Assembly: GCA_002269645.1 (NCBI GenBank) | Contig: NIVC01000712.1 | Coordinates: 248,001 to 312,000, forward strand | DNA length: 64,000 nt | Direction of reading: 5' to 3' | Source: Macrostomum lignano | Taxonomy: Eukaryota | Shown here: positions 4,701 through 54,894 of the stretch, in pieces | How positions within the stretch are numbered: the first letter of the stretch is position 1 | How the letters are laid out: each line of letters starts with the position of its first letter | Made by a program: the position numbers and the translations under genes | Notes under the pieces: model-generated | Database searches by the model: none | What the model saw: the letters and a program-made list of their open reading frames with translations, nothing else | Told to the model about the DNA's origin: nothing

Positions 4701-8301
<3,601 letters not shown>

Positions 8302-17141: not shown

Positions 17142-17174
17142 CTGGGAGCCAAGTAGGTGAAAATCCACTGTTTG

Positions 17175-17467
17175 CCTTTGTTGGTTTGGGGCGATTCTCG
17201 TGTTGGTTTGGGGGCGATTCTCGTGTTGGTTTGGGGCGATTCTCGTGTTGGTTTGGGGCGATTCTCGTGTTGGTTTGGGGGCGATTCTCGTGTTGGTTTG
17301 GGGGCGATTCTCGTGTTGGTTTGGGGCGATTCTCGTGCTGGTTTGGGGGCGATTCTCGTGTTGGTTTGGGGGCGATTCTCGTGTTGGTTTGGGGGCGATT
17401 CTCGTGCTGGTTTGGAGGCGATTCTCGTGTTGGTCTGGAGGCGATTCTTGTATTAGTTTGGGGCGAT
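17175..17467. repeat. 23-bp minisatellite (GTGTTGGTTTGGGGGCGATTCTC), ~13 copies, at the duplication junction
   Basis: Tandem units visible. Confidence 0.95.
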
Positions 17468-18839: not shown

Positions 18840-21570
18840 TTAGAAATCGTTCTGCATCTTTGCGTCGCTATAATAGGCATTCAGATCGCGATTCAAAGCC
18901 GAGCCGGTGTTCTGCATATAGGCGTCCAGTTCTCTGTCCAGGGCCTCCTTGTTGGCTGCGGACCCGCCGCCTCCGCCACCACCGCCGCCACCGCGACTTC
19001 CACGACCGCCGCGACCGCGGCTGCGTCCACGCTGACCGCCGCCGCCACCGCCGAAGCCGCGACCGCCGCGGCCGGCTCCGGCGCCGAAAGTCAATCGAGG
19101 ATATCTCGGAGGGCCGCCGCCGCCTCCTCGACGTGGCCCGCCGCCGCCGCCAGCAGCGAAATTGGCGGCAACTGCGGACCGGTTCAGGCCGCCCAACCTG
19201 GGAGCCAAGTAGGTGAAAATCCACTGTTTGCCTTTGTTGGTTTGGGGCGATTCTCGTGTTGGTTTGGGGCGATTCTCGTGTTGGTTTGGGGGCGATTCTC
19301 GTGTTGGTTTGGGGCGATTCTCGTGCTGGTTTGGGGCGATTCTCGTGTTGGTTTGGGGGCGATTCTCGTGTTGGTTTGGGGGCGATTCTCGTGCTGGTTT
19401 GGGGGCGATTCTCTTGTTGGTTTGGGGGCGATTCTCGTGTTGGTTTGGGGGCGATTCTCGTGTTGGTTTGGGGGCGATTCTCGTGTTGGTTTGGGGGCGA
19501 TTCTCGTGTTGGTTTGGGGGCGATTCTCTTGTTGGTTTGGGGGCGATTCTCGTGTTGGTTTGGGGGCGATTCTCGTGTTGGTTTGGGGGCGATTCTCGTG
19601 TTGGTTTGGGGGCGATTCTCTTGTTGGTTTGGGGGCGATTCTCGTGTTGGTTTGGGGGCGATTCTCGTGTTGGTTTGGGGGCGATTCTCGTGTTGGTTTG
19701 GGGGCGATTCTCTTGTTGGTTTGGGGGCGATTCTCGTGTTGTTTTGAGGGCGATTCTCGTGTTGGTTTGGGGGCGATTCTCGTGTTGGTTTGGGGGCGAT
19801 TCTCGTGTTGGTTTGGGGGCGATTCTCTTGTTGGTTTGGGGGCGATTCTCGTGTTGTTTTGAGGGCGATTCTCGTGTTGGTTTGGGGGCGATTCTCTTGT
19901 TGGTTTGGGGGCGATTCTCGTGTTGGTTTGGGGACGATTCTCTTGTTGGTTTGGGGGCGATTCTCGTGTTGGTTTGGGGGCGATTCTCGTGTTGGTTTGG
20001 GGGCGATTCTCGTGTTGGTTTGGGGGCGATTCTCGTGCCTTTTTGGGGGCGATTCTCGTGTTGGTTTGGGGACGATTCTCGTGTTGGTTTGGGGACGATT
20101 CTCGTGTTAGTTTAGGGCGATTCTCGTGTTGGTTTGGGGCGATTCTCGTGCTGGTTTGGGGGCGATTCTCGTGTTGGTTTGGGGGCGATTCTCTTGTTGG
20201 TTTGGGGGCGATTCTCGTGTTGGTTTGGGGGCGATTCTCTTGTTGGTTTGGGGGCGATTCTCGTGTTGGTTTGGGGGCGATTCTCGTGTTGGTTTGGGGG
20301 CGATTCTCGTGTTGGTTTGGGGGCGATTCTCGTGCCTTTTTGGGGGCGATTCTCGTGTTGGTTTGGGGACGATTCTCGTGTTGGTTTGGGGACGATTCTC
20401 GTGTTAGTTTAGGGCGATTCTCGTGTTGGTTTGGGGCGATTCTCGTGCTGGTTTGGGGGCGATTCTCTTGTTGGTTTGGGGGGGGGGATTCTCGTGTTAG
20501 TTTCAGGGCGATTCTCGGGCAGGTTTGGGCTGAATAATTACTAGACTTGTTTTATAATGACGTTTCATAAGACCAGAATTACCACACTGTTCTACTAGCA
20601 GTAGGACAGACCTAACTGGTAAATTGTATTAGCAATGATTAAATTCATAGACTGCTAACCTAGAAGTTATCCTTCCTCGTCCTCTGAAACCGCCCCGCTG
20701 CTGACCGTACGACACCGACTGGAAGCCGCCTCTGCCGCCGGCTCCGGCGCTGCGACGTTCAACTCGACCGTCCTGAACTCCGCGCAGGCGCTGGTCGTAC
20801 ATGAAGCCGTCGCCGCCTCCTCCGCCATTCAAACGGCGGGAGCCAGCGAAACCGGCGCGACCGAACGAAGTTGGTCCAGCTCGTTGCTGCTGGACCTGTT
20901 GCCGACCTTGACGGCTCTGCAGCTGCGTGAATCTGCATTGAATTGGAGAATATAAAATAATAACATGTACTCAACTCACCATGGTGGGGCAATGATAAAG
21001 TCAAGGACAAAAGAGTTTAATGAAGCTTCAAATTGGGCGATGGTGACTACTGAAGGTTCAGTTGGGGTAATGGTGACTACTGAAGGTTCAGATGGGGCGA
21101 TGGTGACTACTGAAGGTTCAGTTGGGGTAATGGTGACTACTGAAGGTTCAGGTGGGGTGATGGTGACTACTGAAGGTTCAGGTGGAGTGATGGCGCCTAC
21201 TGAAGGTTCAGGTGGAGTGATGGCATCTAGTGAAGGTTCAGGTGGGGTGATAGTGACTACTGAAGGTTCAGGTGGGTGGTGGCATCTACTGAAGGTTCAG
21301 GTGGGGTGATGGTGCTTGCTGAAGGTTCAGATGGGGTGATGGTGACTACTGAAGGTTCATGTGGGGTGATGGTGACTACTGAAGGTTCAGATGGGGTGAT
21401 GGTGACTACTGAAGGTTCATGTGGGGTGATGGTGACTACTGAAGGTTCAGGTGGAGTGATGGCAACTACTGAATGATCAAGCAAGGTGAATAAGAACAAG
21501 CATACCTATCATTTAGAGTCCTGCTTGTACCATCGCCTAGCTTAACTTTAACAGGCAGTCTACCAGCCAT
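18840..21570 (-). CDS. CHTOP: Chromatin target of PRMT1 (CHTOP/Fop) homologue, 231 aa, 3 exons
   Basis: Exons 21570-21506, 20932-20660 and 19197-18840, GT-AG and in phase (65+273+358 nt). N-terminus MAGRLPVKVKLGDGTSRTLNDRFTQL matches the CHTOP KVVL...SLNERFT box; central RG/RGG tract; C-terminal duplicated LDxELDAYM motif. Confidence 0.9.
19235..20520. repeat. 23-bp minisatellite (GTGTTGGTTTGGGGGCGATTCTC), ~55 copies, in CHTOP intron 2
   Basis: Tandem array; it explains the many repetitive plus-strand ORFs. Confidence 0.99.
21036..21473. repeat. 30-bp minisatellite (GGTGACTACTGAAGGTTCAGGTGGGGTGAT), ~14 copies, in CHTOP intron 1
   Basis: Tandem units visible. Confidence 0.95.
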
Positions 21571-23685
21571 TGTTTAGGTTGGGTGTGAGCTGCCCACTGG
21601 AAAAAGAGAATTATATTTTATCATAAGTAAAATAATACGTAGCAGACAAAAGCCTGATACAAGCCAAATAAATATTTATATAATTTTACACATTATGTAT
21701 ATAACATATGTTAAAAAATTAAGAGCAAGACAAGAACTTTTTAACTTGTAATATAATGTTCAATATATATATTTCTTAATGGCCAATGTTTTACTATCAT
21801 ACATTCTTATTGATTCTTATTTAATCATAAAAATCAAAATTTGTCATTTTTTAGATAAACTGAATTTTAAACTATTGTTTCACTTAATCTTAATAGCTAG
21901 TTCTTTAATATAAATCTTAACTCATTACTAGAAAATTTGGGATGGGATTTTTTATTTGCAATAGAGTAATATTATTTCAAAAATAATAGAGAAATTGTAG
22001 ATTTCTTGAATCTACCCTTCCAATCTAGTTATATCTTCTAGTGTTTAATGTTATATTCTGTTATTTTATACATTTTTTATTATACAAGTACAAACATTGA
22101 GAATCTAAGATACTATACCAGTTAGTTACATAGCATGTAACAACTATATGGCATGTTTCAATAGTATCAATATATTTTAGCAATGCCATTAAACACTTTG
22201 TTATGCAACTTGTGCTTCAAATACTATATTTCTTAACTATTAGATTAACCAAAAAATGACAATTACCATTCAAAATTTTATATAACAATCAATCTGTTAC
22301 CAAAATAGATAGGCAATATAAACATAGATAAGAGATATTAAACATTGCTTGATACAAGAGGTATCCAAAAAGTAGTGATACTTTTGCTTATATACTCAGA
22401 GCTTTACTACATACTTAAAAATCAACAACTTTAATATTGTTAAAAAGCAGAAAAATCTGCTTTAATGTGACAAAAAAATCATCCTTATACATTGTTTTAA
22501 AAATAGTTATTACTGTCTATTTGAGCTAAGGTGATCTATACACTTACAAAAAACTTTACAATCAACCTTGATAAATAAATTGCCATGCAACTTATTGCCT
22601 TGGCTCTGTAAATAGTAAATCTCCTATCCACTTTTTCCAATGGTCTATAATGCATAAATTGTATGTTGCTACCCTACCTTTGAATATGTACCTATAACTA
22701 TTGGTTGAGCTAGTCTTAAAAAAGTAAACACTTGTGCAACAAGAAGAAAAGCTGGCAATGCAAAGACTTTTTGGCACTCATTATTTGCACAGTAACAATG
22801 TAAATATTACTGTTGTTATTTACATGGTAACTAAAATAAATACTATAGTTTTATATACTCTATAGTGCTAGTGCTTAAAGTTATAAAATAGTCCAGTTAT
22901 ATTTGACTACAAATCTATCCTCTTGAAGGCAAATGAGTTGCATTCTCATTTTTTCCTTTGAAACACTCTTTGCATTACTAATAATAAAAGCTAATAAAAA
23001 TCCCATATACTAAAAATAAGTTTGTCAGTATTTATCTATGTGATCAATTAGAGAAAAAATGGCTCAACCAATTTTGTTCAAACTTTGCACCATTCAATCA
23101 AATTTTTTTGTGACAGTATATGCATTTTAACTAAGAAAGTGCTCAATGCTAAAGGGATTAAATATTTATAAAAAATGCTTTTTCAACTTGAAATATATTG
23201 TAAGAATGCTAAAGAAAAAATGATTGGTTTAATTCTAGGCTATAAACATATAAGTCATACCAAAACTTCATTTATTGCCTTTAGTTAGTTTAAAATCATT
23301 ATGAAAATAAAGATATAAGGACAAATATTGAGTAGTCCCTGATAAAAAATAATTATTAGGCCTATATTTATTTCAATTACTGTGTAAATAACCCTAGCAA
23401 TATTTACAAAATACTATGCAAATAATGATTGCCACGAATTTTACCATAGATAAAACAGCATAGCTTATATGCTTGTAAAATGTTACTTCACTTGTTTGAT
23501 TTATATTTAGTTATTTATTATAGCTCTAAAGCTTTATAAACCTATAACTTAAGGCATATTAAAAACTCAAAAAGGTTAATTATATAGTTTTTTGTAAATA
23601 TATAAACCACTCTACTTAAAGAAATAGGTATAAAAAACAAAATATACCTATCCTAAATTTTTATCTTCAAAGGCCTATCTATAAG

Positions 23686-24175
23686 GTAACTGGTCATTTT
23701 GCCCATAAACCATTTTGGCCATGGACCATTTTGCCTCCAATTAGCCTCTGACTGTTTTATACTTTATCATGGTTTTACACTTTGTGCTTTGATTCTAAAT
23801 TTTGGTAACAAATCTTATACTTTTAGTATTTCTGGCTTTATCTTGCTTGTAACCGAGAAACCCTTTCTCACCCTCTGATTATACAAATTGGCTTTAATTG
23901 TTGCACTTTTGAAAGGAATAACTTTAAAAAAACTTGTAATAATTCACAATTGTAATAAACAAAAATTGCAATAATGTAATAACACAATTGTTGTGTCAAC
24001 AATTCAGATCATATTTTATTACACATTAAAACTAAAAATTAGCATTGAAAAAAATAAAGATACATGTATGGCTATATCTCTAGTTAATACATAATCACCA
24101 TTTTGGCCAAAGCACCCATTGCCAAACTGGTTTATGGGCGAAATGGACTAGGGGCAAAATGGTCTGGGGGTGAAA
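23686..24175. mobile_element. MITE-like element with inverted subterminal repeats (Mutator-like)
   Basis: TCATTTTGCCCATAAACC at ~23690 is inverted relative to GGTTTATGGGCGAAATGG at ~24128, with repeated (G)GCAAAATGG motifs. No TSD found. Confidence 0.5.
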
Positions 24176-24196
24176 TGTCCATGGCTGAAACGAATA

Positions 24197-25186
24197 CAGG
24201 CCAGTTTGGTAACAGCAAAGACAGTTCAGTAACATATTCAAGACAGTTCAGTAACATTTTCCAAAGACAGTTTGGTAATGCCAGAAGACGACCATGTATG
24301 CATTGCTAAGTTTTTATAAAATAATGATGCATTTTATTTATTAATACATAGTTTTTTTACAATAATTATGATAGAGGTGCAATATATTTTGAGAGACACA
24401 TAGACAAACACTGTTATAATTCATGCAACCATAACAATGCAGAGTTAGTTTATTTCAGAAGTTGGTAACTTTTGTTTGGATTTTTGTGATACACGGAGCT
24501 TGTCTACATTGATTTGAAAACAAAAGCAATTTGCAGAACATTTATGAGATACTGTAGCTACACTAAAATACAATTATCACTTGTAAAGTATGTATAATAA
24601 TAAGAACAAAGTAAAAAAATATATTGAAGCAAATATGACTCATACATGTACATAAAAGTTACAGCTCATTCAAATACAAACAATTACACTGTAGCACAAT
24701 GTAAAAAATGTAAATATTCATGCATTGTTCACAGTTACGCAATGCTCATAAAAGCAATTGGTCACTTGGCAACTACATACTTGGCCGCAGCACTTAGCAA
24801 TTGAGCTGCCATTTTGGTGCCTGTCTGGTACTTGGACCAATAACGCATCAGCTTGGCCTCCTTGGTGCGCTGGGCAAGCCTCTGGTAGCGGCTAAGCTGC
24901 TCCTGAGACACCAGCTTAGCGTGAAGAGTGGCTACCCTCGCTTCATTGTAAAGGAGCGAGGCAAGCTTGTAGAAGCCCAGGTTGCCACTCCATGCCCTTT
25001 GGTTGAGGTGATGATGGTAGCCTTCAGGCCCATTGTTTGTTCTGATGTTGGCAAGTTGGCAAGTTGGCTCACTTGGGAAAGAACTTGGAAAAAATCCACG
25101 GGAAGTCAAATAGCACTTTAGTATGGCTAGCTACCATGATGCATTCTATGTATTGTTTATTCACCATCCTCTATCAGTCTCTCCTA

Positions 25187-25232
<46 letters not shown>

Positions 25233-26159
25233 GTCTCTCTTTTTCTATTCCATTAGCTTTGTCTAATCCCACTCTTTTGAATTTCTGCTTCAACCTCTGG
25301 GACAGTGAAGTTGAAAAAAGACAACAACAGCCTGGTATAAAATTCTATATCAAATCTACATTGATATTCATTTCATTTTCATAGATAATGGAAATATGAC
25401 CAAAAAGTGTTCAAGATCATAGAAATTCAATAGGGTGCACTTTTTAAAAATAAAATTATATATGCATTCACAAAAATACTTCAAATATTTCTTGCAATCA
25501 TGGTGCGCATGCCATATTGCGGAAGGTTTTCTGTGTACGCAGGACACATTTTTATTGAATTTTCAATTGTATGGCAACAGATTTTAAATGTACACCAACT
25601 TAAAAAATGGTAAAAAAATCAATGAATATTTTAATTTAAACTTAAACTACAAAAAATTGATAACAACATGACGATTGTTGTGATAATTCCAGCAATTAAA
25701 ATGATTGGTAAATGAGAAAATAGTAGCAGAAAAAATGGTTTTTGAAATAACTTAACACAGAAAAAGCACGAAAAAATTCTTTATATTAATTTCTACACCA
25801 GTTGCCATACACCACACTGTATGCCATACTGTACACAGCCATGAAATGTACGCTAGTGTATGCCACTGAAATCAAGTGTACGCTGGAATTTTCTGGCATA
25901 TATCCCACATCCACAAAATGGTGCACATGGCATTGGTGAGTTCAAAAATGTTGTTAGTTGCATTCAATATAACAAATTTAAACATGCGAATAATACCTGT
26001 TGATATATAAATTGATAGTATCTAATTGACTTATTGTAATTTATTTATGCTACTTACTCTCAATAAGCTTGTTACTGAATCGTCCACAACTTGTTACTAA
26101 ACTGTTCTTGGTGTTAACAAACTGTCTGTTATCAAACTGTCTGTTACCAAATTGTCCTG
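24197..26159 (-). mobile_element. Deleted Mutator-like (MULE) DNA transposon with a transposase C-terminal relic (24762-25109)
   Basis: Terminal IR CAGGCCAGTTTGGTAACAG / CTGTTACCAAATTGTCCTG (17/19), with inverted subterminal GACAGTTYRGTAAC repeats at both ends. The relic peptide has RTNNGPEGYHHHLN, the RTNNxxEGxH motif of invertebrate MULE transposases. Confidence 0.7.
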
Positions 26160-26295
26160 TCCTCGCTAAAATGGTTTGGGGGCAAAACAACCAAAATTCA
26201 TCTATAAAAGATAAAGACTAAAATATAGAATAGATTAGGTTAGATCTAGGATCTAAGATCTAATACTAATAGATCAGTAACTATTGAACTAATTA

Positions 26296-26771
26296 GTTAT
26301 AACCCATAGTCCGGATCATGGCAGGCGTACGCCGGAGTGAAAATTCGTGTCTTTTCAATTTTACGCCGACATAAAGTTCAAAAAACTTTTATGCCAAGTC
26401 AAAAGTTGTTTATACGCCAACTTTTTAAAGAATTTGTATTTTTTAAAACTTAAAAATAATTATTTACTTGAAAACGGCTGATTTTTTCCAAAAACTAATA
26501 TTCTTTGTTTTAAATTTGTTTTTCTTGTAAATTTCGTTAATATTTTCTGTTTTGTTAACCGTTTATGTTCAGAAGAGCTTTGGTTAATTGATATTTAATT
26601 ACACGATTGCATCAGCCCTGAACTTTTCTATTTCTTGTACGCCAGTTGTTTACACTTCATGTTGAACCTGAATATTCTATACGCCAAATGTACGCCAAGA
26701 TTGTCAGCGAGTGCAAAATTACGCCGGAAAATTCCGGCGTAAAGGCCACCTTCCGGACTATGGGTTATAAC
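26296..26771. mobile_element. MITE, ~476 bp, with a perfect 20-bp terminal inverted repeat
   Basis: GTTATAACCCATAGTCCGGA (26296-26315) and TCCGGACTATGGGTTATAAC (26752-26771); internal repeated TACGCC motif. Confidence 0.85.
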
Positions 26772-33014: not shown

Positions 33015-36000
33015 TCACTCGTTAGCCCAGGCAAAAACCACTGACCAAAGACTGCAGGCGTGCTTGCCTTCCAGTGAGCTGGGCAGATCCTGGAATGCAA
33101 CCTCGTACACAGCGTCAAAATCTGCCATCTGGTTGAGGGGGTGCTCCTGCAGGCTGGTTGGCAGACTGCGCAGCTCCAGCCGAATAAGACGATGCAGCAT
33201 CTCTAATAGAAGGCTGCGCTTGTTCTTCAGCCCAGGTGGCAGCTCTTGCAGTTGTTCTTGACTCAGTGGTTCAGCCTGTTCGGTATCGTATGGTTCAAAG
33301 CCGTCCTGCGCCAACTGTTTCCAACGTAAATGGTCAAGTGACATCCACAGCAGACGCGTGTGGGCAATGGTCACTTGGCGCTTTAGGGCGTCTGTCGGTA
33401 GGCCGCTATCCATGTGCAGCGTATTTTGCATAAAGTCGTCAAGCAGTTGACTCGGATTCGAAGGCGTCAGAGAAATTAAAAAGTTGATAACAACCTTCAG
33501 CGAATCGTCCAGCAGAGCAGTTAGAATTGGCGTCGGCAGATTGCACTGCAGAGCATTCTCTAATACATTGTCCTTTTGTTCAGTCTGTTGAAAAGGAAGT
33601 GTAGCAATGACAAAGTGAGAGGGGAAGCTTAGTGCTCTGATGTATTTAGATAGGCTATTGAATTTCGAAGCAAAACATCATCTGATTTACTAAAATTGAA
33701 TTAAATCTAATCATCCATGCTTAAGTTAAGCTCGTAGTATTTTTGGCTTATGACTATACAGTATGACTAAAATCAATAAGTGAAGCAAATAATATCTGAC
33801 CTGTTTTACACCAAAACGGTCTAGCTGCTTAAAGATCTCCATTAGATTGAAATCCTCGTTGTACACCATCTCAGGCAGGTAGCCACAAATTCTGGGCCGG
33901 CCGCGAACGAGTCGCTCTCTGAGCTGCTGCTGCAGGCCTAAGAAGTTGTACGTAACTTCAGTACTTGCTCCTTGCTTTAGTGAGTATGAAGAATTGGCAA
34001 GTAGCATTGGCTGCAGATCTCTGTCTGGATCGCAAACAAAAACACTTGCTTCGTCGATCAAACCAATCTTAACTGTATCTGGTTCGGAATTTTCACACGC
34101 ATCAATGACAGCGTTGTGCGCGTCAACAAGCAGTTGAATCAAACCAACTATGCATCGGCCCCACGGTTTGCGGTGCGGCAGCAGAGCAGCTGATGGTGTT
34201 TGTGAATCGAATCGAATGCTCCATTTTTCCACTGGAAAAGCAATCCACGACCAGCCATCCTGCTTCTGTTGCAAAAACCTGGCAGCTCTGTCTGCCAAGA
34301 GTTCATGCAATTCGTTCCATACTTCAACGAATATTTTTACTGCCTCTGAGCGACGAGTCTTGTATTGTCCAACATTTCGAAGCTTCATCTTTTTAGCTTC
34401 CTTTAGTTCACGGTTGTGTTTCCACTCGGAAACAAGTTCTTTTGCTAACTTAACCAGAACTGGAAGATGTCCACATGCTTAAGTATGTGCTGTCGTGCAA
34501 TAACCTCCTTAACTAGTTGGTAACGACCTTGTTCCTCTCCTCCGAGCTCAGTGAATGAGTGAGCAGCACTTCGTATGCTAATTTGCTGTCGATATCGCCA
34601 CAGCAGTCCGATTTCTTGCCTTGGCTCCATTTCAGAAGAAGTCTCGTGCACCAAGCGCATAATATTTGAGGCAGTTCTGGCGCCATCGTCCTGGCTCATC
34701 ACGCGATTCGACTCGCGAAGTTCAGATGAAAGAGATTCAACAATAGGTTGCAATAGGTTCCTGTAAATTTCATCTTCGAATTCCCTCCTGTCCTTATCTT
34801 TTGTCAAATCAAAATTTCTATTGACACTTTGAGAAGCACCAGCTGTAGCCAGGCGCTTCAAAACGAGATGAAGCGCATGGAATGCGTCCTCAGAGCTTCG
34901 ACCTGTCGCATCACAAAAGAGGTGCAAACCAACTTCAAACTCCTCTCTTCCGACATCCTTAAAGTGTTTTCTGCTGCCTGTTTCCGAGTTCGAATCGTTT
35001 CCGAGCTGTAGAGCAAGACCCATCATCATTCGCATCAAAGCGACTCCGCAACTCGGAAGGTTGCGCACCGGCTCCGGAATGCCGGTAGAAACAAAGCCCT
35101 TGCTTGTTCTATCCCCGGCCGTGTATTGCTCATTGCCATCTTCAGGTCTGTGATGAGTGCCGCCGATTTTGCTTCCACAATCAGGACACGCACTAGTTTC
35201 CATAGGGAGTTTGCACTGCAGCATTAATAATAAAATATTGGGTGGTTAAAAATGATTATTTCACTTTAATCGTTAGTAAACAAAACTTATACTTTCAGTA
35301 CCTCTCCGACGAAATACAGGTGTCCCTTCGGGCATTCTGGAAAGTAACATTTTTATAGCTTAGTTTAAACTTCAGTTTGTATTATTTAGCTACGGTGGAA
35401 TTTCACTGTACTATCTTACGGAAAGCTGCAGTCTTTGACATGCCAATGTCAACATTTGTCATCACTTCAAATAGAGTATCATGTGGCATCGCTGGTAGAT
35501 ACCATTTCTCGTAGTTTTGCCTCAGGGAAGACAAAAACTTTGCGTAAATTGAATTTCGACTCGAACTGTGTATCTCGTAGGCCAGGTGAATAAGTAACAC
35601 AGATTTGTGTGCCTCATTTTCTTTCGTTTTTCCCAGTCTCTCCAGCTGCGCGTAGCACTCCTGAAATAAGTTTTCAAACTGCTTTGCGTATAAATGGACG
35701 AGCAAACTATTTTGAATAATATTAAACTAAAACAGAAAGGAAACATACACGTTCGAACTAAAACTATAGAATTTCCCCATCATTAATTTACTCTTTGCCT
35801 GAAACCTCAGCGCCCGGACACCAAAATAACCTATTCGAAATGTAAATATTTCATGGTTAATAGTGCCAGAAACCCATGCTAGATCAAGCGGCAGACTTCT
35901 TAAGGCTGGGGAACAAGCCAAGGCACTTGCTTATACATGTAGTTTAAGCCAGGTGCTTAGACAAACATGCAAAACAAAAATTCCTTAAATGTCCCGACAA

Positions 36001-39000
36001 ACAGTCTCGCATATATAGAGACCCGGAAAGTTATTTGCCCTGACCCACGGCTTTGCTAACTAATTATTTAATCAGTCATTTAACTGATAAACTCGACCCC
36101 TTTGATTTCGTTGTGGGTCAGGCTCAGGTTAAGTATATAGCACGAAACTCTCCGGCGAAAAAGCTATCGGCAGCCGAACTGACAAGATTTCCATATTAGG
36201 TTAATATTGTGAGTATCTTGGTGCAACGCCTTAGGCGACATCGTCCCTCAAGAAGCGGTGCGGCAATTCTGCCCATTCTGCCAATTCCGATAATTCCGGT
36301 AACTCTTGAGCACATACGAGTGCGCGGATACGGCATATGTATGTAGCATGCAGTTCACAATTAATAGGTGTCTGCATTCCACCAACTTACCCTTGTGCCC
36401 TTTGACATAAGCTTCAGCATGTGTTTTTCGCATTCACTCAACTTCTTTTTGTTTACTTCCCCCTGAAGCCGGAAGTTAAATGTAGCGACAACGAGAGCAA
36501 TAACAGCATTTGAATCTCTAACGGCAGACGGCGTCTGAAATGGTTTGTTAAAAATATACTATTAGTTTTTATATCATTATTATGTCTTAAGCGTGACGAA
36601 CTTGCAAACGAAATAAAATCTCTAGTGCCTATTAATGTGACGTAAAAGCTTAGCACATCAATGAGTAAACTATACCTCGGACTTGAAGTCTCCAGTTAGA
36701 TATAAATTCCAAAGATACTGTTTCAACCCCCTGTAGGCTTCCGAGTGACTATGCAGTAAGTCGGGCGCCCACGTTCCATTGTCCATTTGGTGCAGCTCAT
36801 TGTTGTAGGCCTCTGCGAGACACGGGTCGGTCTGAATGCGCTGCAGGGTGGCGCAGGTTCCACCTGCCATGCATAAGCAGCGCAAAAAGTAAATCCTAGA
36901 CCACCTGTGCTCGCTTAGCGTACGAATTAGGATAGTCGCATCGTCGGTACTCAAAAGATTTCGGACCGTTCCTTCGGTTGCTAATTCAGCTAAACGACAG
37001 GCCAACCTGAGCAGATCCACTCGCCACTCAGCCATCGCCTGAAGCTGAGGAATTAAAACCGTCTCGACAGACTCACTATTGGGTAGCTCAACCCTAGGCA
37101 TTGACAAGTTAACAACTTTATTTTTGGCTTGTTCCATGGCAACGGAATCCTCGAGGCAATTTAGTAAAATGAGTCGAAGTTCAGATCTGAAGATGAAATT
37201 GAAATGGCAAAACATTGATAGACTTAAAATTACTACAATATAGTAGTACTGGCACTCGAAAATACAAGTATGCAGCTTACTTGCTTTCCGCACCGACTTT
37301 CTCATCGGCGCCAAGGATGTGCTCCTCTAATCGTTGAACCACCTGGTCTGAGTTGTAGCGCATTAACTGCTGCAGCACGAACGACCTAAACATTGGCGAC
37401 TCATCCTTGTCGTTACTGAAGTAACCCATGACATTCCCGTCACCACCAGAGCGGGTTACGTAGCTTAGAAGATGATTGCACAGTTCTGAATCAGGTGGCT
37501 GACCTTCAACAAAACACAACGTTGAAACAACTTCCATCACAAATGAGTTGCATCGATCTTTAAACTTCACTAGTACATCCGGCTTTTCATTGTTAATTGT
37601 ATTAGGATCAAACGGAGTTTGACATTTTATGCAGACAAACGGCGCGCTCTGGATGCACTTGTCCCTGCATTGGTCACACAGTCGATCATTGCATGGCAGG
37701 CGGGTTAGGCTGTCAGTGCGGTTTGTGCACTGTGAGCAGGTGTCTGTTCTGGAATGCAGTAAGTTTGGTTTCGAGTAAAATTTTAGCAAAAAATGGCGCA
37801 AGTTTGGGTCGTCAAAATTCTTTAAACTTTATATACGAAGTAACTTTATTACGAGTACTACTAAGTGAAAAATAGAACTAAACTCTGAATAGTACAACAG
37901 GTCCTTAGACCATAACACTCGCACGGCCTACTATGGTAAAAAATTAAGCCTTACCCCATGGAAAATTCAAGCAATTCCTCTCGATTTTTCTCAAGAAACT
38001 TTTCAATTTCTTCGATTCCAGTTTTATCTTGAAATTTCACGGCTGCAGAGGACCACAAGCTCTAAAAAGTAATCAATTTTAAGAGTTTATATTATGATAC
38101 TAGAATGACATACAGTTATCAATGCGAATATTAAAAGCAACAATTTTTTTAGTTTTAACCTACGTTCCATAGGCGAATGGGTTTTATCGTTGACTCATTC
38201 AGCTCTTCATTGTCGAAGGGCATCGTTACATTTCGAAGAAAGAGGGCCACGCAGTTTATCTTGTCCCATTGCAACTGCATTTGCGGATTTTCCAGCTCAG
38301 CTAGGAGTCGCACGATAATTGTCCTGGACTTGTCCACCCTGGACAGCCACTCTTTTCTTTTTTGTGCTTTGTTCAATTCGTGACGAGATTTCTCGAAGTG
38401 TTTGGCGAATGCATTGAAAAGTTCCTAAAGCGGAAGTGAATAAAAAGATTTTGACTGCTGTTGTATTTAACTTCAATTGGTTTCTTCCGGTTTTAGTGAT
38501 AGCCTAGATATTAATTAGTTCTAATAAGTTTTCTGGCATGTCTTGTCTTACAACAAATTAGTTCTTACCGATGGTAAGTCTTGAAAGTTCTCAACTTTTT
38601 TTAGGTTCTTGGCCAGGTCGCCAATCCGCTGCGTTAATTTCACGAATATGTTTACATGCTCAATGTGCTTTTTCAGCGATTTAAATGCCTGAAGAATCGT
38701 GTCTGCAAGAGTTTGCTCCTTACGCTGCTCTTTTAACACACTTTTCACTGTCTCCTGCAAAACTGCTTGCAACGCGACCACATCGGAACTTGTGATTGAA
38801 GACACACAAATGTGCAGGATGTCGTGACAGAAAGCTTCAAGTAAGAAATCCGAACTCTTTTCTTCGGCCAGTGCCTGTCCCATAGGTGAATCACGGATCG
38901 ACAGATTTCCAGCATTGCTTTGTTCTTCAAACTTTTCCAGCCGCTTAACTATCGCCCAAGAAAACGGAAACTGGGAAGCGAAGTGATGCCCATCCGCTGC

Positions 39001-42000
39001 TGAGCTCGGCACCTCCACGCGCGCCTGTTCAACTGGTCCGACTTTCACGAAGTTTTCGATTGTCTCGTCAAACATGGCAGCGTGTGGAGCCAGCTTCAGC
39101 CATAGGGCTCGGGTCTCTTCACGCTGGTAGTTGGCCAGATTCTCGTCCGTATCGGCAAAGGCTATAAAGCTGGCCAGAGCTGGTGCCGTCTTTCGTCTGA
39201 GCAGACGCCAGGTGCTCTCACTGAAGGATTGGAAGGGCTGCTTGTAATTATTTCGAGTCGTTTAAAATTTAAGGATAGCTACTTTTCTAGCTCAAAACTT
39301 TAGACCTTTCATTTTAAACCTATGATACAGATTTGAAAAGGTTAGGTATATGTTGGATCCCTAAGGCCGGTTTACACTATCAACGGGCCAAAGAGTGCTC
39401 AAACCAATTTTAAAATGGGTTTGAGACACTTTTACTTAGATTTGAGAAATCTTTGGCCGATGCAAAATGGGCAGACGTGCAGGCTACGAAGTTGCACTGC
39501 GTAAAGTCGACCTAAACGAATTAACACTAAAACGATAAAAGGAGCATACAAAAAGCCTTGAACAGGAGCCCCCTAACAGCCCCTTAACAGCAGTCACGAT
39601 AGCAAGTTGGACTCCGGTGGTTGGTAATGGCAATCCAATGATAAATAAAAAGAAGAGAAGGTAGAGCGAAATACACGGACGAGTTTCGCGAGGTTGATCA
39701 CCAATAGTGTTAATTTCTGCGCTTTTGTTCAATTCACAAGTCTTGAGCACGAGCCATATATTATAATCAGTAGACCGATACAGTAAGCTATAGTAAGATT
39801 CTCCAGCAAATAGAATTAAGTCAAAATGCTGATGGGTAAAAATGTAAAAATGTGGTTCAATTGGGCGTTAATCTAGATACAGGCTCGATGAAAACTTACA
39901 TAAAAGTTCCAGCTTCTTTGACTTTTCTACTCGATGCAGCATCCTCGGACAGCCAATTTTCCGGCGAAATTATTGACCTAGAGTTTTCGTCCATCGTTCT
40001 TAAAGCCTTGTGCAAAAATACTCGAACAGTTTGTAGGAAATCTTCATCTAAAAGTTAGTTTAATTGGATATGCGTGTTTTTCTTACCAAACAATTTGAGT
40101 TTATTTACTACTTCCCCATAACAAATAACGAAAATCCATGCTCTTACCTTTAAGTGCATTAGAGACGGTCTCGTTTCTATCAGTAAGCTTGTTCCCCTTG
40201 CCTTGCTTTTCTCTTAAAATGCTTAAAGCTGGAAGAAGGGTCTTCTGAAGCAGTAGTCGCAAGTTTACCGGCGCTTTTATTCCGAGCATGAGTTCTTGAC
40301 TGCCCACTGCAGGTAGTTCAGGAATTGGCCTTTCAAAGAGCTCAGGAACAGTAAGCCTATCTAGCATCGGAATGTTAATTCTGTGTGAAGAAACGAGTTC
40401 CTCGATGTGCACGCAGTGCCACAGGCCACAATCGAGTCCATTAAAAGGGTTAGAGTGCGATCGAATCAACTTGATGATTAAAACAATTTGCAAAGATGTT
40501 GAATCACTGCTGGTTTTGCCTGACGTGGGTTCCATGTTTCTCTTTTCGGCTAAATACATTTCTTCGATGTTAAACTTGACACTAGACACGACCTTCTGAA
40601 AATTCTGGTTTTGCTGCAAGCCTTCGTACTGCAGTATGAGTAGACCTTCGCTGGTCATGCATTTGCGTAGAAATTCTTTGAACTGCAGTTCCGTCTCAAA
40701 CTGACTGATGTTTTTATACGTGGCACCCTTGAAGATAGGCATCTGACTGAGTGTGGCCTGTTCATTCGCGCCAAGTATGCTATCGTAAGTCGTAACTTGA
40801 AGGAACGGCTTCTTTAGCTTGTAGTTATTGAGGAAGGATGCAAGGCACCCGAGGCCATTTTCTTCATAGTAAGAATTCAGAATACCAGCCTTTTCGTCGC
40901 TCAGAGAAGTTGACGCAAGCCGTATCAGGCTATCAGGCGTGGCGGTAGACAAAACCCTGCGCTTTACGCTGTCAAAGTCACAGTTTTCGTCGATAGCCAG
41001 AGAGGGGATGACATCGTCATGGTAGCCCACAAATGACCATGACAAAGCGCTGTCTCCTTTCTCCTCCTGAGAAAGAAATCTGTTCATCCACTCTTTAAAC
41101 TTTTCACAGAATCCCAGCATATCAGGCTCCAGTATTGTTCTCCACGTGAGCCGGTGCTTTTCAAGTCGATTCAGTAGCGGTATTGGAAACAGATCTTGCA
41201 CTGTTTTGCCATCGGCTATGACAATTATTCTAAAGTCTGGATGAATTTTTGACTTTAGTCGGTGCGTACCTAGTCCAATGTCAACAAAATAATCTTGACC
41301 CAGCTTTTCATAACACAGGTTCAAAACGTCGTAAAGGGATTCATACAAATTTTCTAGGTTCATTAAAACAACTGTGCCTCCCCTTTCCATGCACTGCTTT
41401 ATGCGGTTGATGTTCAAACAAATGACAGAATAATCTTGATCTTTAGGAAAGCTACTACCGAACAAAATATGCAAATCCTGCTCTGCGAGGAGACGTTTTA
41501 AAACCTTGAAGCCAGATGCGTTCTCTGTAATAAACAAAATATATCGTTGGTCTGGCCCAGTGGCTTTCAGGGCGTCTTTTATGATCAAATTTGAGTCGAT
41601 AAAAATTCTGTCGCTACGAAGGATCTCATCGAAGAAAAAATGAGTTGGATCAAAGTCTTCCAATCCACTAAAGTTTCTTTGTAAGCAATAAGCCACGTCA
41701 ATGTCTTTGAGTTCAAGCCGTGTGTCTCTGGATTTCTGAGCTAAATGTTTTACTGCACTAAAGTAGTCCCGCAATCCAAAAAACTCGCAGTTTAATCTAC
41801 CCCCGTTGAAAAGTAGATGGAAAAAGTCTGTCAAATTACGCAGGTTCTTGCTTTCTTGTACAATCGTATCTTTGCAAATGCCTTTTGCCGTTTTTAAGAG
41901 GTCCGACTTCGTTGGCACATCACGCAGTACGAACAGGCCTCGGTTCATCTTTGCGGGGTCTAAAGCCCAGTTTGAGATGCCAATGAATCCAATTCTCTCA

Positions 42001-45000
42001 TGAGCAAGACCAGGAAGGCTTGGTCCGCCATCCAAGTCCATCCGAACTCCGTCTTCGAGAAGTGAATGCAAAACCTTTAGAGACATTTGCGGTGTGTCCT
42101 CAGCAAGACCAATTTCATCAAGTACTACGACAGAAACGTAGTTTTCTGGATCGGATTTCTCTATTTGCATTTTTGCACTCTGCTGAAACAGCTTTTCAAT
42201 TCCATCTGATGTGGACCACGGCGAGCACTGAAATGAGAGCATGTGCGTGTCTGGGAGCTTTTTGAATGCACTTCCTCTGGAGTTCTCACCTTTCATGTTA
42301 TTCTTGACTATAGTTTTTCCTAACGACTTCGAGCTTCCCGGCTTTCCAACAACAAATAAAGGAATCCGCAGGCAGATGCACATGGTCATCATGTACACAT
42401 TTTCTCTCAGCGCCTCATTGTTGGCTACGTAGTCCGGAAGCAGATCCTTTCCATTACAAAGAAGTCGCGATTGAAATTCTGCTATAACTTCTTCGATAAT
42501 ATTTGGTCGGAGATGATTTTCTAGCTGTTCACTTATTGTCAGCAAGTACCTTTCTTTTTTACTACTGGGTAGCCGACTTAAGTAGCACGAAGCTAGGGTC
42601 ATGATCAAATAGCGATCTGTTTTGGAGAGTGACACAGTTAGTTGGTCAGAGCACTCCTCCTCAAACAAATCTTTGGAAAGCCAGTCATATATTAAGATCA
42701 CCCTCTCAACGTCTCGTAAGGAAACGAACTTTGTCTCATCCGTGGCATTGCGCATGAATTTTTGTGACTCGCACACTGCATTTGTTAGGCGGTTTCTGTG
42801 CACTTCACTGAGTCCGTTTAGGCCAGTATCGATCATTCTGACTACGTACTTACGCTCAGCATCTTCGGACAGATTTCCAAAATCCCAAAGGACGCTGATA
42901 AGTGAAAGCGGAAGCGGTTTGACCCGGTACACGAGGCATCGCATCGGAATGTTTCCGAATTTGTCAACGGTTTCTTCTTTCCTCACTCGATAACCCAGGC
43001 CACTGCTCTCCAACCTCTTGATTGTTTCCTCTGAGTGCTTGCGATACGGATTGCAAGCTGCGACGCACCTTAAGCCGTGCTCAAAATCAATCCTTCTGCC
43101 TTTGATGCGCCCGTCCATCATGATTTCTTTGATTAGTCCGACATAGCTCGTTGTGTTGATCTCATCGAAGAAAAGCACTGTGTAAGGTGATTTGTTTCCA
43201 AGCACGGAAAAATTTTTCTCAGCTAGAACTTCCGCTTCAGAGACTGCCTGCTCGATATCACCAGCGGTAATTCCACCATGAACTTTTAAAATCCGAATAT
43301 TATCGATGTCATTTCGAAGTGGTCGCATTATTTTCGCTAGAAAATCAACCAGCTTAGTTTTCCCACAGCCAGTTTCTCCCATAATCACAACAGGAATTTT
43401 GCATCGGAATCTCATGTAAATGGCCAGAATTTTCTTTACATTGTCCATGGTTAGCTCGTACGAAGAATCAAATTCCGGAAGCGTTTCCAGATTTTCGTTT
43501 GAGTCATTAAACCCAAAGACATTCCTAATTCGAATGATCTTCTCGCATTGTTCAAGCTCTTCAAAATCGTCGTCTAGAGGCACTCCCTGATTGAGAAGGC
43601 TTTGCCTAAGCTGTTTCGACATGATACCTTTTTTGAGTATTTTGCCTGTGTTTAAATCTACCAGATTACCGTTGGCGTCAATTTTGAAGCCGATGAAGGT
43701 AAAACTGTCGCTGTCCTGATTAAATAGTAGCAGCGGGTGGCTCTCCTGCTCCCAATGCCGTTTGAGTTGAAAAGATTCAATCTCGCAAATAGGCTGTGAA
43801 CGGCCGTCGTCGTGCCGTCTCTCGCTCTCATCGTCAATGTCAAGAGAGCGCGTTGAAAAGTCTTTTGACATTAAAAGTAAGCAGTCAACGACAAACTTGC
43901 GAAAACCGGGAAAGTACTGCTCTGCAGCAGTGCTGCAAAAATATGACGACTGAAAAGCTTTCATTTGAGCCTGCAAAAATTGTGCAAAATTATTCAAATC
44001 CGACCAGGATGGGTTATTGATTCCGCAGTTTAAGAGGAGCTGGTCAAAGATTTGTGCTACTGGGAGCTGACCACCATCTGCTTCACCACGGTTAATTCGA
44101 TTTCCATCAGAGAGAAAATCAGATAATGCACCAAACGTTTTCAGACGTTCTTTAAAAACTGGCTTCCAGATAGTTTCGGGTTCGGCCCGTTGGATTACTT
44201 CCAAAGTTTCTCTTGGTGTTAGGCACTCAACTTTGGGCAAAAACGGCAGTACATGAAAGCTGGTGTTAAACAGCGTGTTCTCAGAATGCTCTAGCAGGTA
44301 CAGCTCATTGGTTTTTCGCCGCCAGACTACTCCACGTGAATCTACAACAGCGCCAAAAAGGGCAAGCTGGGTTATGCAATAGTCGAATCCTGTTTGTACT
44401 TCCCGCGCAATATCCAAATAAAATACTGTCTTTCCATTTTTACTTTCGAGTTGAAAAACTGACAGCAATTCGTCCACGCACAGATGATCAGTGTTGCAAG
44501 CAAATACTGCTGGAACGCTTTCCTCCTTGCTCCAAGCGAAATGCTCACACACCAGTGACTTTCCCATGCCAGAGCGGCTCGATGTAATCCAAAGAAAGTC
44601 GCTATTCTTTGGTTCTGCCTTCTGCAGAGTTTTTTGAGAAAACTTTTTAATCTTTTCCGCATCTGGCTCCATTGGAAAGTCTTGTTCGTACGGTCTAAGA
44701 TAATTGCAAAATGGAAATTGGCTCTGATTTGCAGATGAAACAAATACGAAGAAGCGCGAGTTCACAGTTCCATCAACTGAATCAATAAGCTTACTAAACA
44801 TTTCTTCAGCGACAACCGAAATTTTGTACGTCAGTTGTTCCGCGTTTAGGATTGTGTAAACTGAATCTCCACTGGGGTCAAGCAGAGCCCTATGGAGGAA
44901 CACGGCTAGCTCTTCTTCACTTGTGCCATCGTGGCACAGTAGGACGTCTTCAAACTGTGGAAGGCGTTTGTATGCAGTGCGAAACAGCTGCAGAGCTAAG

Positions 45001-46349
45001 GACAGATGATTCTTGGCTTCAAGACAGAAAGTGATGGGTGCTTTTTGGTTAAAGAGTTGCTTGAAATTTTCGTTTGCTTTTCGTGTCCGTCTTAAAGACT
45101 TTGCACTTGTAGACAATAGCTCAAGAAATAGATTGACGTCCCCGAAGCTAAGGAAGTCTTTGTAGGACGAACGAATGTTTTGCAAATAAATCTCCCATAA
45201 TTTTTTGAATGCTTCATGGGCTTTTGCACCTCCAATATCTGCAACGTTGAGTTCTTCATCAGCAGTTTTCCAGTTATCTCTCTCCTGGGAGTCAGCGGGA
45301 GTTAGTTTATTTTTCTCCAGTTTGCTGGCCAGATCAATAGCTTTGGGCTTTAAGACATCAAGTGGCTCTTCAGGGCTTGTATATCGAAATAAAATCTTGA
45401 TCGTCTTGCTAACTATATCTTCATTGTAGCCCTCGTCCTCCAGTGCTGCGCACACTTGGTCATGCTTATTTCCTTCCTGATCATCTTTATTCGAGTGAGT
45501 TCGTTTTGCCTTTTCCAGAACTGTGTTATCCACTGTTTGGTTAAAAAGCTCTGCTGTGAAATCAGGGTGGATGTACTGAAGCAGGTCCGAAAGCTCCCTG
45601 TCAACAGTGTCGACTGGATTGGCTGACAAAAACAATGGGGCTAAACGCTTCTGTAGATATTTTATCTGCCTTAGTGAGAAGAAGTTTAAGAAGTAATACT
45701 CTCTCCTCAGTTTCCACACTTCTTCTTTCCACTGCGCGAGGCAGTCCAGAAAGCAATTTGAAATCTTTGCCAATCCATCCCGTAGATTGCAATATTTTGA
45801 AGAGATCTTTTTGTGCGGATTGCAAAATCTAAGCTCGATAGTCACGTTGTCTTTTTGGGTTTCTTTTTGAATCTCCTGTGATAGCGGCAAAAAGACGTCA
45901 ATTGCAATCTGCTCGCATAGAACACAGCAATGAACTTGAAACTGTTTATACACTTCGACAAGGCTGAATATGCTTTCAGTGAGGCCAACAAACTCGCGTA
46001 GTAAATACCTTTTTTCGAAAGTTTCGCCTGCAATAAGCATCAGCTTGGACTGCAAGTCCTTGATGTCGCTCAAGTCGTACGTTTCTGTCACCTTTCTTTC
46101 TTCGGTTTCTTCCACTTCTACATGTAGTTCGAAGTGGTCGTCTTTGTTTACCAAGCAACCGATCCTTAGTTGTCCCTTGCACGTCATTATAGCCTCGATT
46201 TTCTTTATTGTCGACTTTTCAACCGACCCTTGGTTATCTTTAATCGCTCGAATCCAAGAAAGGCGCTCTGCTGTTTCTTTCAGATCGCTTATAATAGCAG
46301 GGTTTTCAGGGGGAGAGAAGCCAGAGATCAGGGGGAGAGAAGCCAGAGA
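33015..46349 (-). CDS. RNF213: RNF213/mysterin-like AAA+ ATPase-E3 ubiquitin ligase (~3550 aa from M46187; 5' end missing; one frameshift, so possibly a pseudogene or an assembly error)
   Basis: Exons: ~46300-40148, 40047-39900, 39220-38569, 38424-38164, 38061-37955, 37748-37281, 37186-36676, 36534-36391, 35726-35420, 35336-35302, 35215-33801, 33584-33015. All internal junctions are GT-AG and in phase. RNF213 motifs: TSSRSGMGKS, IMGETGCGKT, FFDEINTT, VGKPGSSKSL, VLDEIGLAE, NWALDPAKMNRG, GTF, RING, LLNCLEDS, YLPAMP, RZ finger CPKGH...GEC...CPDC...IGG..H. Confidence 0.95.
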
Positions 46350-46560
46350 TCAGGGGGGGAGAGAAGCCAGAGACCAGGGGAGTAAAGCCAGGGATCAGGG
46401 AGGAGAGAAGCCAGAGATCAGGGGGAGAGAAGCCAGGGATTAGGAGTTAAGCCAAGGGTCAGGGGAGGGAAACTGGGGATCAGGAGTGAGAGAAACCAGG
46501 GTCAAAGGGAAGGAATTCAAGGGTCAAGGAAGAAGCCAGGGTCAAGGGACGAAAGCTAGT
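46305..46560. repeat. 22-bp purine-rich minisatellite (GGGGGAGAGAAGCCAGAGATCA), degenerating rightwards
   Basis: Tandem units abut the 5' edge of the RNF213 open frame. Confidence 0.9.
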
Positions 46561-54133: not shown

Positions 54134-54894
54134 TCACATTCCCTCAAAGTACTTTCCACCACCATTTATGCACCGTCGCATGCATTTGTACCATGTCTGA
54201 AAGCGGTCATGGTACTTCAAAGATAGTGTACCCTGTAGAGCTGAATGTACCATTTGGGCAAGGTCTTGTATGTGTGAAAATGGCCTCCCAGAAATGACGG
54301 ATTTGATCCTTGGGAACAGCCAAAAGTTGCACGGTGCTAGGTCTGGAGAGTAGGGTACATGGGGCAGCAGCTTGGCCCCCTTCTGCTCCAGGTACGCCAT
54401 GGTTGAGGCCGCTCTGTGTGGTGCCACATTGTCATGGTGCAGCAGGAGTCGAGGTCCATGCCTGGTTCTTGCACGTTCCTGCCGCTCCTGCAGCACGCCT
54501 AGCAGAACAGTGTCTGTGTAGTACCTGGCAGTCACTGTGGCACCCGCTGGAAGGATATTCACGGATACAACACCCTGAAAGTTGAAAAAAATGTTGAACA
54601 TCTGCTTCCGACTGCGGAATCTGGTCTTCAGCACCTCGGGCCTCGGGCTCATCTTCTGCACAGGCCACAACATCTTTGGTCACGGATTTCTGGGGTTGGC
54701 CAGACCTCAGTTCATTGTTGAAGCTGTCCCAGCCTTCTAAGAAATGACGCAGCCAGCGGGCAACCATGTCAAATGATGGAGCAGAGTCAGCTGAAACATT
54801 CACCAGATTCACCAGTATGAATCTCAGTTGCTTTGCAACCAAGTTGCATGCGCATAAAGATGTAGAAGCGAACACTGTCTTTTGATGGTTCCAT
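54134..54894 (-). pseudogene. Mariner transposase pseudogene
   Basis: N-terminus MEPSKDSVRFYIF...VARW...RSGQP; frameshift; internal deletion removing the first catalytic Asp region; LLHHDN; PYSPDLAPCNFWLF with the third catalytic D changed to N; YFEG end. Confidence 0.93.

Follow-up and report, generated by a model that had tools for sequence, protein, structure and literature searches.

A 64,000-nucleotide stretch of the genome of the flatworm Macrostomum lignano (contig NIVC01000712.1, forward-strand positions 248,001 to 312,000 of assembly GCA_002269645.1; the whole of it is called the window below, and its positions are numbered from 1) carries on its minus strand a gene of the RNF213 (mysterin) type, which combines an AAA ring with a ubiquitin ligase (E3) module. 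The gene interval very probably comprises the 3′ part, approximately 3,570 codons, of a member of the M. lignano RNF213 family, present as one of two near-identical copies and damaged in the form in which it has been assembled. As assembled, the window copy cannot make the full protein: it lacks the 5′ end of the gene, and a single base is missing from exon 11. Its assignment to the RNF213 family can be regarded as secure from the sequence comparisons given below, and the best protein matches are all to Macrostomum lignano, in agreement with the flatworm origin suggested by a preliminary description of this DNA that had been made from the sequence alone. A piece of 28,098 bases from the GenBank record of this contig (assembly Mlig_3_7) agrees without a single difference with window positions 24445-52542.

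Gene model, family assignment and active-site residues

The gene is read from 12 exons (Table 1), and all of its 11 introns, 83-730 nt in length, begin with GT and end with AG. A large stop-free frame, running from 46349 to 40101 (2,083 codons), serves as an exon as far as a GTAAGA donor at 40148, and the spliced product amounts to 3,584 residues, provided that one frameshift is bridged; except for the stop that this frameshift induces, the 10.7 kb of coding sequence contain none. The preliminary description had proposed 12 exons, a single one of more than 6 kb carrying the ATPase core, and an AAA ring, E3 scaffold, RZ finger and C-terminal domain (CTD) that could be rebuilt across them. All 12 exons are found within the interval then proposed, on the minus strand, and the large exon, at 6.2 kb, contains the whole AAA ring. 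The four parts of the protein are likewise present, but the frameshift parts the RZ finger from the CTD and the N-terminal part is absent, and the idea that the gene is whole in this copy was not borne out. Two features had escaped that description: the reading frame is discontinuous, and position 46349 is not the start of the gene, being the base after an in-frame stop.

In searches of the PDB with phmmer, in which matches to dynein and midasin were judged at E ≤ 0.001, the large exon matched RNF213 chains only (E = 7.9e-275), with query residues 395-1953 aligning to mouse residues 1803-3428, i.e., to AAA1-AAA6; the limits of this core and the mouse domain map are those of PMC7311170. Once spliced, the exons downstream of it align without interruption to mouse residues 3518-5099, from the end of the hinge through the E3 module, RING and RZ finger to the CTD (E = 1e-62 for mouse and 1e-72 for human RNF213). 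From the linker to the C-terminus the window gene is colinear with mammalian RNF213 (mouse 6TAX, 6TAY and 7OIK; human 8S24 and 9G08), sharing the six AAA units, hinge, E3 scaffold, RING position, RZ finger and CTD. Its Walker motifs in AAA3 and AAA4 are identical or near-identical to the mammalian ones and align with those of the fish, shark, amphioxus and nemertean counterparts, so that both catalytic Walker A/B pairs are conserved, as the preliminary description had stated. In mouse RNF213, AAA3 and AAA4 are the sole catalytically competent AAA units, and the same two units of the window gene are predicted from their Walker motifs to be competent for binding and hydrolysis of adenosine triphosphate (ATP).

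Two other identities were considered and rejected. In the case of the dynein heavy chain and midasin, whose AAA rings go with an active AAA1 and with a stalk/MTBD or a MIDAS domain, respectively, Pfam gave only weak AAA_5 and AAA_7 matches, on the AAA3 unit, and neither protein contributed a PDB chain at the above threshold. In the case of ZNFX1, Pfam scans returned no helicase family and no ZNFX1 chain was among the PDB matches. ZNFX1 has the RZ finger (PF20173) in common with the window gene, this being the feature that defines the link between RNF213 and ZNFX1 (PMC11549300), but it is a superfamily 1 RNA helicase, whereas no helicase domain was found in the window gene.

The RZ finger is interrupted by intron 10 (...FVGE / CKLP...) and in its spliced form scores 63.7 bits against Pfam model PF20173 (cut-off 27). 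It follows the motif C-x3-H-x6-C-x8-C-x2-C-x8-H, in which four zinc ligands, a nucleophilic Cys and a general-base His are spaced exactly as in the human protein, where the corresponding residues are C4505, H4509, C4516 (nucleophile), C4525, C4528 and H4537 (general base) (PMC11549300). The predicted nucleophile of the window gene, Cys2924, is the first codon of exon 11 (35213-35215) and is followed by the CPDC ligands and then by His2945. With its six key residues kept at the human spacing, the finger is intact, as had been proposed, and the exact motif is kept in every M. lignano paralogue tested.

The RING-like finger, C-x2-C-x11-C-x-D-x2-C-x2-C-x11-C-x2-C, occupies the homologous position, retains seven of the eight ligands and has Asp (C-N-D-R-L-C) instead of the His of canonical RINGs and of human RNF213; unlike the RING of mammalian RNF213, it goes undetected by Pfam RING models. 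Since the RING is dispensable for RZ-dependent activity in mammalian RNF213 (PMC7311170, PMC11549300), the Asp variant is no argument against function. The substitution of Asp for this His (C-x-D-x2-C) is common to the M. lignano paralogues P0005-P0009 and P0170 and to the window gene, the canonical His being found in P0165 and in the nemertean protein; it is a conserved variant among several paralogues, with putative zinc binding.

An exhaustive HMMER search with the AAA3-AAA4 region as query, in which representative protein clusters were counted, gave 3,743 representatives at E ≤ 0.001 and 829 at E ≤ 1e-30. The closest matches (51-65% identity) are further M. lignano proteins, among them full-length ones (5,501 and 5,325 residues) and some that carry an RZ finger. 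They are followed, at 44-50% identity, by proteins annotated as rnf213-alpha-like or rnf213-beta from the nemertean Lineus longissimus, the molluscs Mizuhopecten and Haliotis, fishes and a shark (fish and shark RNF213 being approximately 47% identical to the window gene in this region), together with unnamed proteins of Lottia and amphioxus; more distant relatives occur in Glomeromycota fungi and in one ciliate. In a neighbour-joining tree, built from one 568-column block of the AAA3-AAA4 region and without support values, the M. lignano sequences form one clade of at least four lineages, which is sister to the other metazoan RNF213s, with the fungal homologues outside. The identification as an RNF213/mysterin homologue made in the preliminary description therefore holds: PDB matches are to RNF213 only, the top non-self matches carry RNF213 names and the tree, with the reservation on support just given, groups the gene with metazoan RNF213s. 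The paralogues P0005-P0009 are a further M. lignano lineage, which brings the count to at least four or five paralogue lineages, the window lineage being represented by two near-identical copies. On these data the expansion is lineage-specific and arose within the Macrostomum lineage.

The rnf213-alpha-like proteins of Lineus longissimus (XP_064634464.1), Mizuhopecten yessoensis (XP_021359260.1), Haliotis rubra (XP_046556283.1) and the crinoid Anneissia japonica belong to the same family and have the same architecture, with 44-50% identity in AAA3-AAA4, but in the tree they fall in a clade apart from that of the M. lignano sequences. The RZ spacing of the Lineus protein is that of the window gene, and its RING, the only one checked among these proteins, is a canonical C3HC4. 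Differently from mammalian RNF213, the window gene has few introns, one of its exons measuring 6.2 kb, and belongs to a multi-copy family rather than being one of one or two genes. Among the distant relatives, the fungal protein P0011 (Funneliformis geosporum) is RNF213-like, with CBM20, AAA and RZ domains as in human RNF213, and the ciliate protein P0142 (Tetrahymena malaccensis), of 7,271 aa, was matched over the AAA3-AAA4 region at 32% identity. Mab-21 (cGAS-like), EF-hand and ankyrin domains, which the names of UniProt fragments ascribe to M. lignano paralogues, were rejected, as Pfam found none of them at E ≤ 0.001.

Table 1. Features of the RNF213-type gene in window coordinates
Feature	Coordinates	Strand	Remarks
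Whole gene interval, RNF213-type	33015-46349	-	12 exons, 11 introns
22-bp minisatellite (TCAGGGGGAGAGAAGCCAGAGA, ~6 units)	46306..46444		adjoins the homology start; includes the in-frame stop 46350-46352
Exon 1	40148..46307	-	6,160 nt supported by homology, frame open to 46349; part of linker and whole six-unit AAA ring
AAA3 Walker A, GETGCGKT	43356..43379	-	model aa 991-998
AAA3 Walker B, LFFDE	43161-43175	-	
AAA4 Walker A, GKPGSSKS	42324..42347	-	model aa 1335-1342
AAA4 Walker B, VVLDE	42114-42128	-	
Exon 2	39900..40047	-	hinge region
Exon 3	38569..39220	-	E3 module
Exon 4	38164..38424	-	E3 module
Exon 5	37955..38061	-	E3 module
Exon 6	37281..37748	-	RING-like finger at 37622-37738
Exon 7	36676..37186	-	E3 module
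Exon 8	36391..36534	-	E3 module
Exon 9	35420..35660	-	E3 module, ending where the RZ finger begins
Exon 10	35302..35336	-	35 nt; CPKGHLYFVGE, the first half of the RZ finger, including the zinc ligands Cys2913 and His2917
Exon 11	33801..35215	-	second half of RZ finger (to 35150), then E3 module; holds the frameshift
Missing base, exon 11	34471..34472	-	window CATGTG-GACATC, sister CATGTG-C-GACATC (His-Val-Arg-His)
Exon 12	33015..33584	-	CTD; TGA stop 33015-33017; readable only with the exon 11 frameshift bridged

The sister copy and the two lesions

Part of the window gene is already annotated in GenBank as BOX15_Mlig004148g1, marked 'partial' (PAA78029.1, 1,910 aa), with the same introns as in the present model, and a separate gene call covers a 202-aa in-frame fragment within exon 1. 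Clustered at 90% with PAA78029.1 is a second protein, PAA73448.1 (BOX15_Mlig006754g1, 3,554 aa), encoded on contig NIVC01001011.1 (locus L003). Positions 11809-26307 of this locus match window positions 46307-31783 at 98.36% identity, on into the 3′ flank, i.e., over at least 14.5 kb, and the exon-intron structure is the same, with 12 of 12 exons colinear and the sister frame open over 3,569 shared codons. The two copies differ at 43 amino acids in 3,568 aligned codons, and their RING and RZ exons are 100% identical. The sister copy differs from the window copy in that its exon 1 reaches at least 1.3 kb further in the 5′ direction and is preceded by extra exons, in that the Arg codon at the frameshift site is intact, and in that it has itself undergone an in-frame 3-nt deletion (one Ser). 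The sequenced M. lignano line has a duplicated genome, with 180 Mb in blocks of ≥95% identity (PMC5730564); the existence of two near-identical copies fits this, and we infer that they are homeologues from a recent genome duplication. The sister copy on NIVC01001011.1 is probably the reliable functional gene.

The first lesion is the loss of the 5′ end. Homology to the sister locus starts exactly at 46307, the edge of the minisatellite, and homology to all relatives at approximately 46304-46307; extrapolated from the AAA alignment, this corresponds to roughly residue 1500 of the mouse protein. Beyond the minisatellite, pyrimidine-rich related repeats (gene strand) reach approximately 46600. 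In the sister locus the coding sequence is uninterrupted at the break point (...VVRKVK/ENPAIISDL..., the slash marking the break) and continues for at least 508 residues more, with additional 5′ exons up to 9 kb upstream. Other paralogues and the crinoid RNF213 conserve a block within these extra N-terminal residues, MIYLGDSGD...KKIE.F. The window copy has therefore lost its start codon, no fewer than 508 N-terminal codons and additional exons on the 5′ side. Note also that the first in-frame ATG, at 46187, lies downstream of the start of conserved coding sequence and that an in-frame stop stands at 46350-46352, so that this copy is without a start codon for the conserved protein. The long N-terminal arm (mouse residues 1-1290, with a CBM20 domain in human) and the complete linker are absent, which sets the window copy apart from mammalian RNF213, as does the break of its frame before the CTD; absence of the arm is a defect of this copy and not of the M. 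lignano family, P0170 being 5,501 aa long.

The missing sequence was not found nearby: blastn with 11.9 kb of the sister locus detected no sister N-terminal sequence on either strand of the window or in the adjoining 9.4 kb past its end, and tblastn with the N-termini of seven M. lignano paralogues and of nemertean, amphioxus and crinoid proteins found no N-terminal exon in the same DNA. The sole tblastn matches to paralogue N-termini, at 17168-17434, correspond to a non-coding 23-bp satellite. An intron at the break point was considered on account of an acceptor-like TATAAG at 46288-46293, but it receives no support, because coding sequence runs through the equivalent point in the sister copy and in the paralogue P0003. 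A scan for inverted repeats, made in view of a possible miniature inverted-repeat transposable element upstream of the satellite, gave one weak pair only. Since the satellite is short, the DNA beyond it contains ordinary annotated genes and no N-terminal sequence lies within 27 kb, the 5′ truncation is probably real.

AT-rich DNA stands in the place of the 5′ part, and it contains a mariner-type transposase remnant (PF01359) and open reading frames of the transposase-associated DUF4218 type (54137-54893 and 58041-59888, both on the minus strand). Further along, at 62922-63410 on the plus strand, lies an intact, single-exon NADAR-domain gene of 162 aa (PF08719, E = 1e-53) that is annotated in GenBank, and a Sec3/exocyst gene begins just past the end of the window (region L004, 11273-20489).

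The second lesion is the absence of one base from exon 11, at 34472/34471; the form with the C present reads CATGTGCGACATC. The frame as assembled stops at a TAG at 34445-34447, with a loss of approximately 410 residues that make up the last part of the E3 module and the entire CTD; the CTD-homologous sequence of exons 11-12 is in frame in the sister but out of frame in the window copy. The same TAG closes the GenBank product (...HILKHVDIFQFWLS), 255 codons past the RZ cysteine, of which 247 are native and 8 frameshifted, so that the missing base deprives this product, too, of the CTD and of the last part of the E3 module. M. lignano paralogues, the nemertean protein and one shark RNF213 are continuous across this site, and in the M. 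lignano paralogues the Arg is conserved. A tiny intron that would rescue the frame was rejected, as the two frames overlap by less than 35 nt and the introns of the gene measure 83-730 nt.

An older model bears directly on this second lesion. UniProt entry A0A1I8G8T5 (P0001, 'RZ-type domain-containing protein'), derived from the earlier ML2 assembly, is 100% identical to the C-terminal 1,517 residues of our model; it contains spurious introns inside the 6.2-kb exon and is an older model built largely from the window copy. At every diagnostic site of the C-terminal half, including those flanking the frameshift, it has the window-type residue, and it has the Arg, which means that an intact haplotype of the window type has been observed in the same inbred line. 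A fixed lesion is therefore less likely here than a polymorphism or an error of assembly. The older WormBase/UniProt models A0A1I8G8T5 and A0A1I8JAH1 (P0002) have a mosaic character, with residues of both copies at the diagnostic positions (25/7 and 9/7), and spurious introns interrupt the 6.2-kb exon in them. The gene is thus already present in public databases, as an uncharacterised hypothetical or 'RZ-type domain-containing' protein.

State of the window copy

Comparison of the window and sister coding sequences reveals 67 synonymous and 47 non-synonymous differences, corresponding to a synonymous divergence (dS) of 0.029, a non-synonymous divergence (dN) of 0.0056 and a dN/dS of 0.19. Neutral evolution since the duplication would predict approximately 130 non-synonymous differences, as estimated from the counts. 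When amino-acid changes are polarised with the paralogues, 12 are derived in the window copy versus 7 in the sister, which is not a significant excess. Together with the low dN/dS, this indicates that the window copy is not an old pseudogene. Divergence between the copies is distributed as a mosaic, introns included: long stretches have 0-2 mismatches per 500 bp, and the blocks 42307-41308 and 35315-34318 have 12-23. Such patchiness suggests that the copies have undergone gene conversion or that the assembly has mixed their consensus sequences.

That the copy is instead a young pseudogene, having lost its 5′ end by a rearrangement after the duplication and having then acquired a real frameshift, so that it is weakly or not transcribed, must be considered doubtful. 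It would account for two independent disabling lesions, neither of which is found in the sister copy, and for GenBank models that are fragmentary when set against the 3,554-aa model of the sister; moreover, the block around the frameshift is the most divergent of all, with 23 mismatches per 500 bp, and has a higher dN/dS, codons 3000-3499 having 12 synonymous and 16 non-synonymous changes. Against this explanation stand an overall dN/dS of 0.19, in which non-synonymous differences amount to 47 where about 130 would be expected under neutrality, the lack of a significant excess of derived changes, and the intact Arg codon that the other assembly has on a window-type haplotype.

A few of the same facts can be turned in the opposite direction, towards a complete and functional gene in which both lesions are artefacts of assembly Mlig_3_7, one a consensus indel at 34472/34471 and the other a misjoin at minisatellite position 46307. 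The Arg of A0A1I8G8T5, the absence of other stops in 10.7 kb, the 11 canonical introns and the low dN/dS are all compatible with such a gene, but it is nevertheless very unlikely. The satellite, with its ~140-300 bp, is far below the long-read lengths expected for an assembly of this type, and it would be an unusual place for a misjoin; ordinary separate genes (NADAR, Sec3) lie in the 27 kb upstream, which show no missing 5′ coding sequence, and the deposited annotation itself stops at the frameshift TAG. The genome is, on the other hand, highly repetitive and redundant, which complicates its assembly (PMC5730564).

A third possibility, to which we would give tentative room though the balance still lies against it, is that of an N-terminally shortened but working variant, which would use a new 5′ end or trans-splicing near 46288 and the ATG at 46187, would do without the N-terminal arm, and whose frameshift would reflect a minor allele or an error of assembly. 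Both the 6.2-kb exon and those downstream of it are, without exception, open and constrained, a pyrimidine-rich tract followed by TATAAG occurs just upstream of the conserved sequence, 38.8% of M. lignano genes are trans-spliced (PMC5730564), the paralogue P0003 is annotated with a Met just 245 residues upstream of the same point, and in mammals RZ-dependent activity is located in the C-terminal modules (PMC7311170, PMC11549300). However, the equivalent of the putative acceptor is plain coding sequence in the sister copy, conserved residues upstream of the ATG at 46187 would be lost, and the low dN/dS could be explained by gene conversion.

Several points weigh against the reading given at the outset, that of the 3′ part of an RNF213-family gene in a damaged copy. 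One or other of the lesions could have arisen in assembly, or the two could both be real. A low dN/dS may be due to gene conversion or consensus mixing, which may also mask recent decay. The RING-like finger matches no Pfam RING model at E ≤ 0.01, and the tree is a neighbour-joining one from a single block that carries no support values. The GenBank annotation of the window copy is fragmentary (a 5′-partial model of 1,910 aa and an internal piece of 202 aa), which fits with weak or ambiguous transcript support. Finally, activity, substrates and a role in immunity would be carried over from mammalian RNF213 alone.

Possible mechanism, role and surroundings

The residues and the domain order that the mammalian enzyme requires are present. 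By analogy with mammalian RNF213 (PMC7311170, PMC11549300), nucleotide binding at AAA3 and AAA4 would gate the E3 module, ubiquitin would pass from a cysteine-reactive E2 onto the RZ residue Cys2924 by transthiolation, and His2945, acting as general base, would move it to a substrate that need not be a protein. The substrates of mammalian RNF213 include the lipid A part of lipopolysaccharide (LPS) (PMC7311170, PMC11549300). Several RNF213 genes of the Manila clam show a strong response to LPS, peptidoglycan and poly(I:C) (PMC7430831), and in symbiotic deep-sea bivalves RNF213 has been reported to be expanded and has been linked explicitly to LPS ubiquitylation (PMC9993606). With these two reports, the idea of a defence role for invertebrate RNF213, which the preliminary description had put forward as a putative pathway of non-protein ubiquitylation, is already in print, and RNF213 homologues are already annotated across many invertebrates (nemertean, molluscs, crinoid); our search of the literature found no paper that joins RNF213 with Macrostomum or with a flatworm.

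One could see in the M. lignano radiation of RNF213, with its RZ site kept in all paralogues tested, its several Asp-RINGs and possibly forms lacking the N-terminal arm, a diversified cell-autonomous defence that ubiquitylates non-protein microbial surfaces, but we consider this unlikely. The question has some bearing beyond this species. M. lignano is a transgenic flatworm model amenable to RNA interference, and to our knowledge a flatworm has no interferon system; the expanded family would offer a tractable system in which to ask whether RZ-dependent ubiquitylation of microbial surfaces is older than the interferon-driven immunity of vertebrates. Since the window copy is 5′-truncated and frameshifted as assembled, experiments would be better aimed at BOX15_Mlig006754g1 or at the full-length paralogues. 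The practical yield is a corrected gene model and a warning on the window copy; the finding itself adds little that is new, and its modest interest lies mainly in drawing attention to the expansion of RNF213 in a flatworm that lends itself to experiment.

The other end of the window is rich in satellite DNA. Large tandem arrays occupy 6377-7256, 9445-10933, 14858-15347, 16107-16472, 17179-17467, 18331-18528, 19235-20529 and 21021-21473; they consist of (AACT)n, of a 26-bp unit repeated 57 times, of a 23-bp unit repeated 56 times and of others, with periods mostly not divisible by 3, and they cause a strong GC skew and pseudo-open reading frames in several frames on both strands. The spurious tblastn matches between these arrays and the 'extensin-like' N-termini of UniProt M. 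lignano RNF213 models suggest that such models translate satellite DNA. Ordinary animal genes flank this satellite-rich region, namely an innexin exon at 4704-5507 on the minus strand (PF00876, E = 1.5e-43) and, at 12565-13200 on the plus strand, an exon with three LIM-domain matches (PF00412, E = 5.6e-32).

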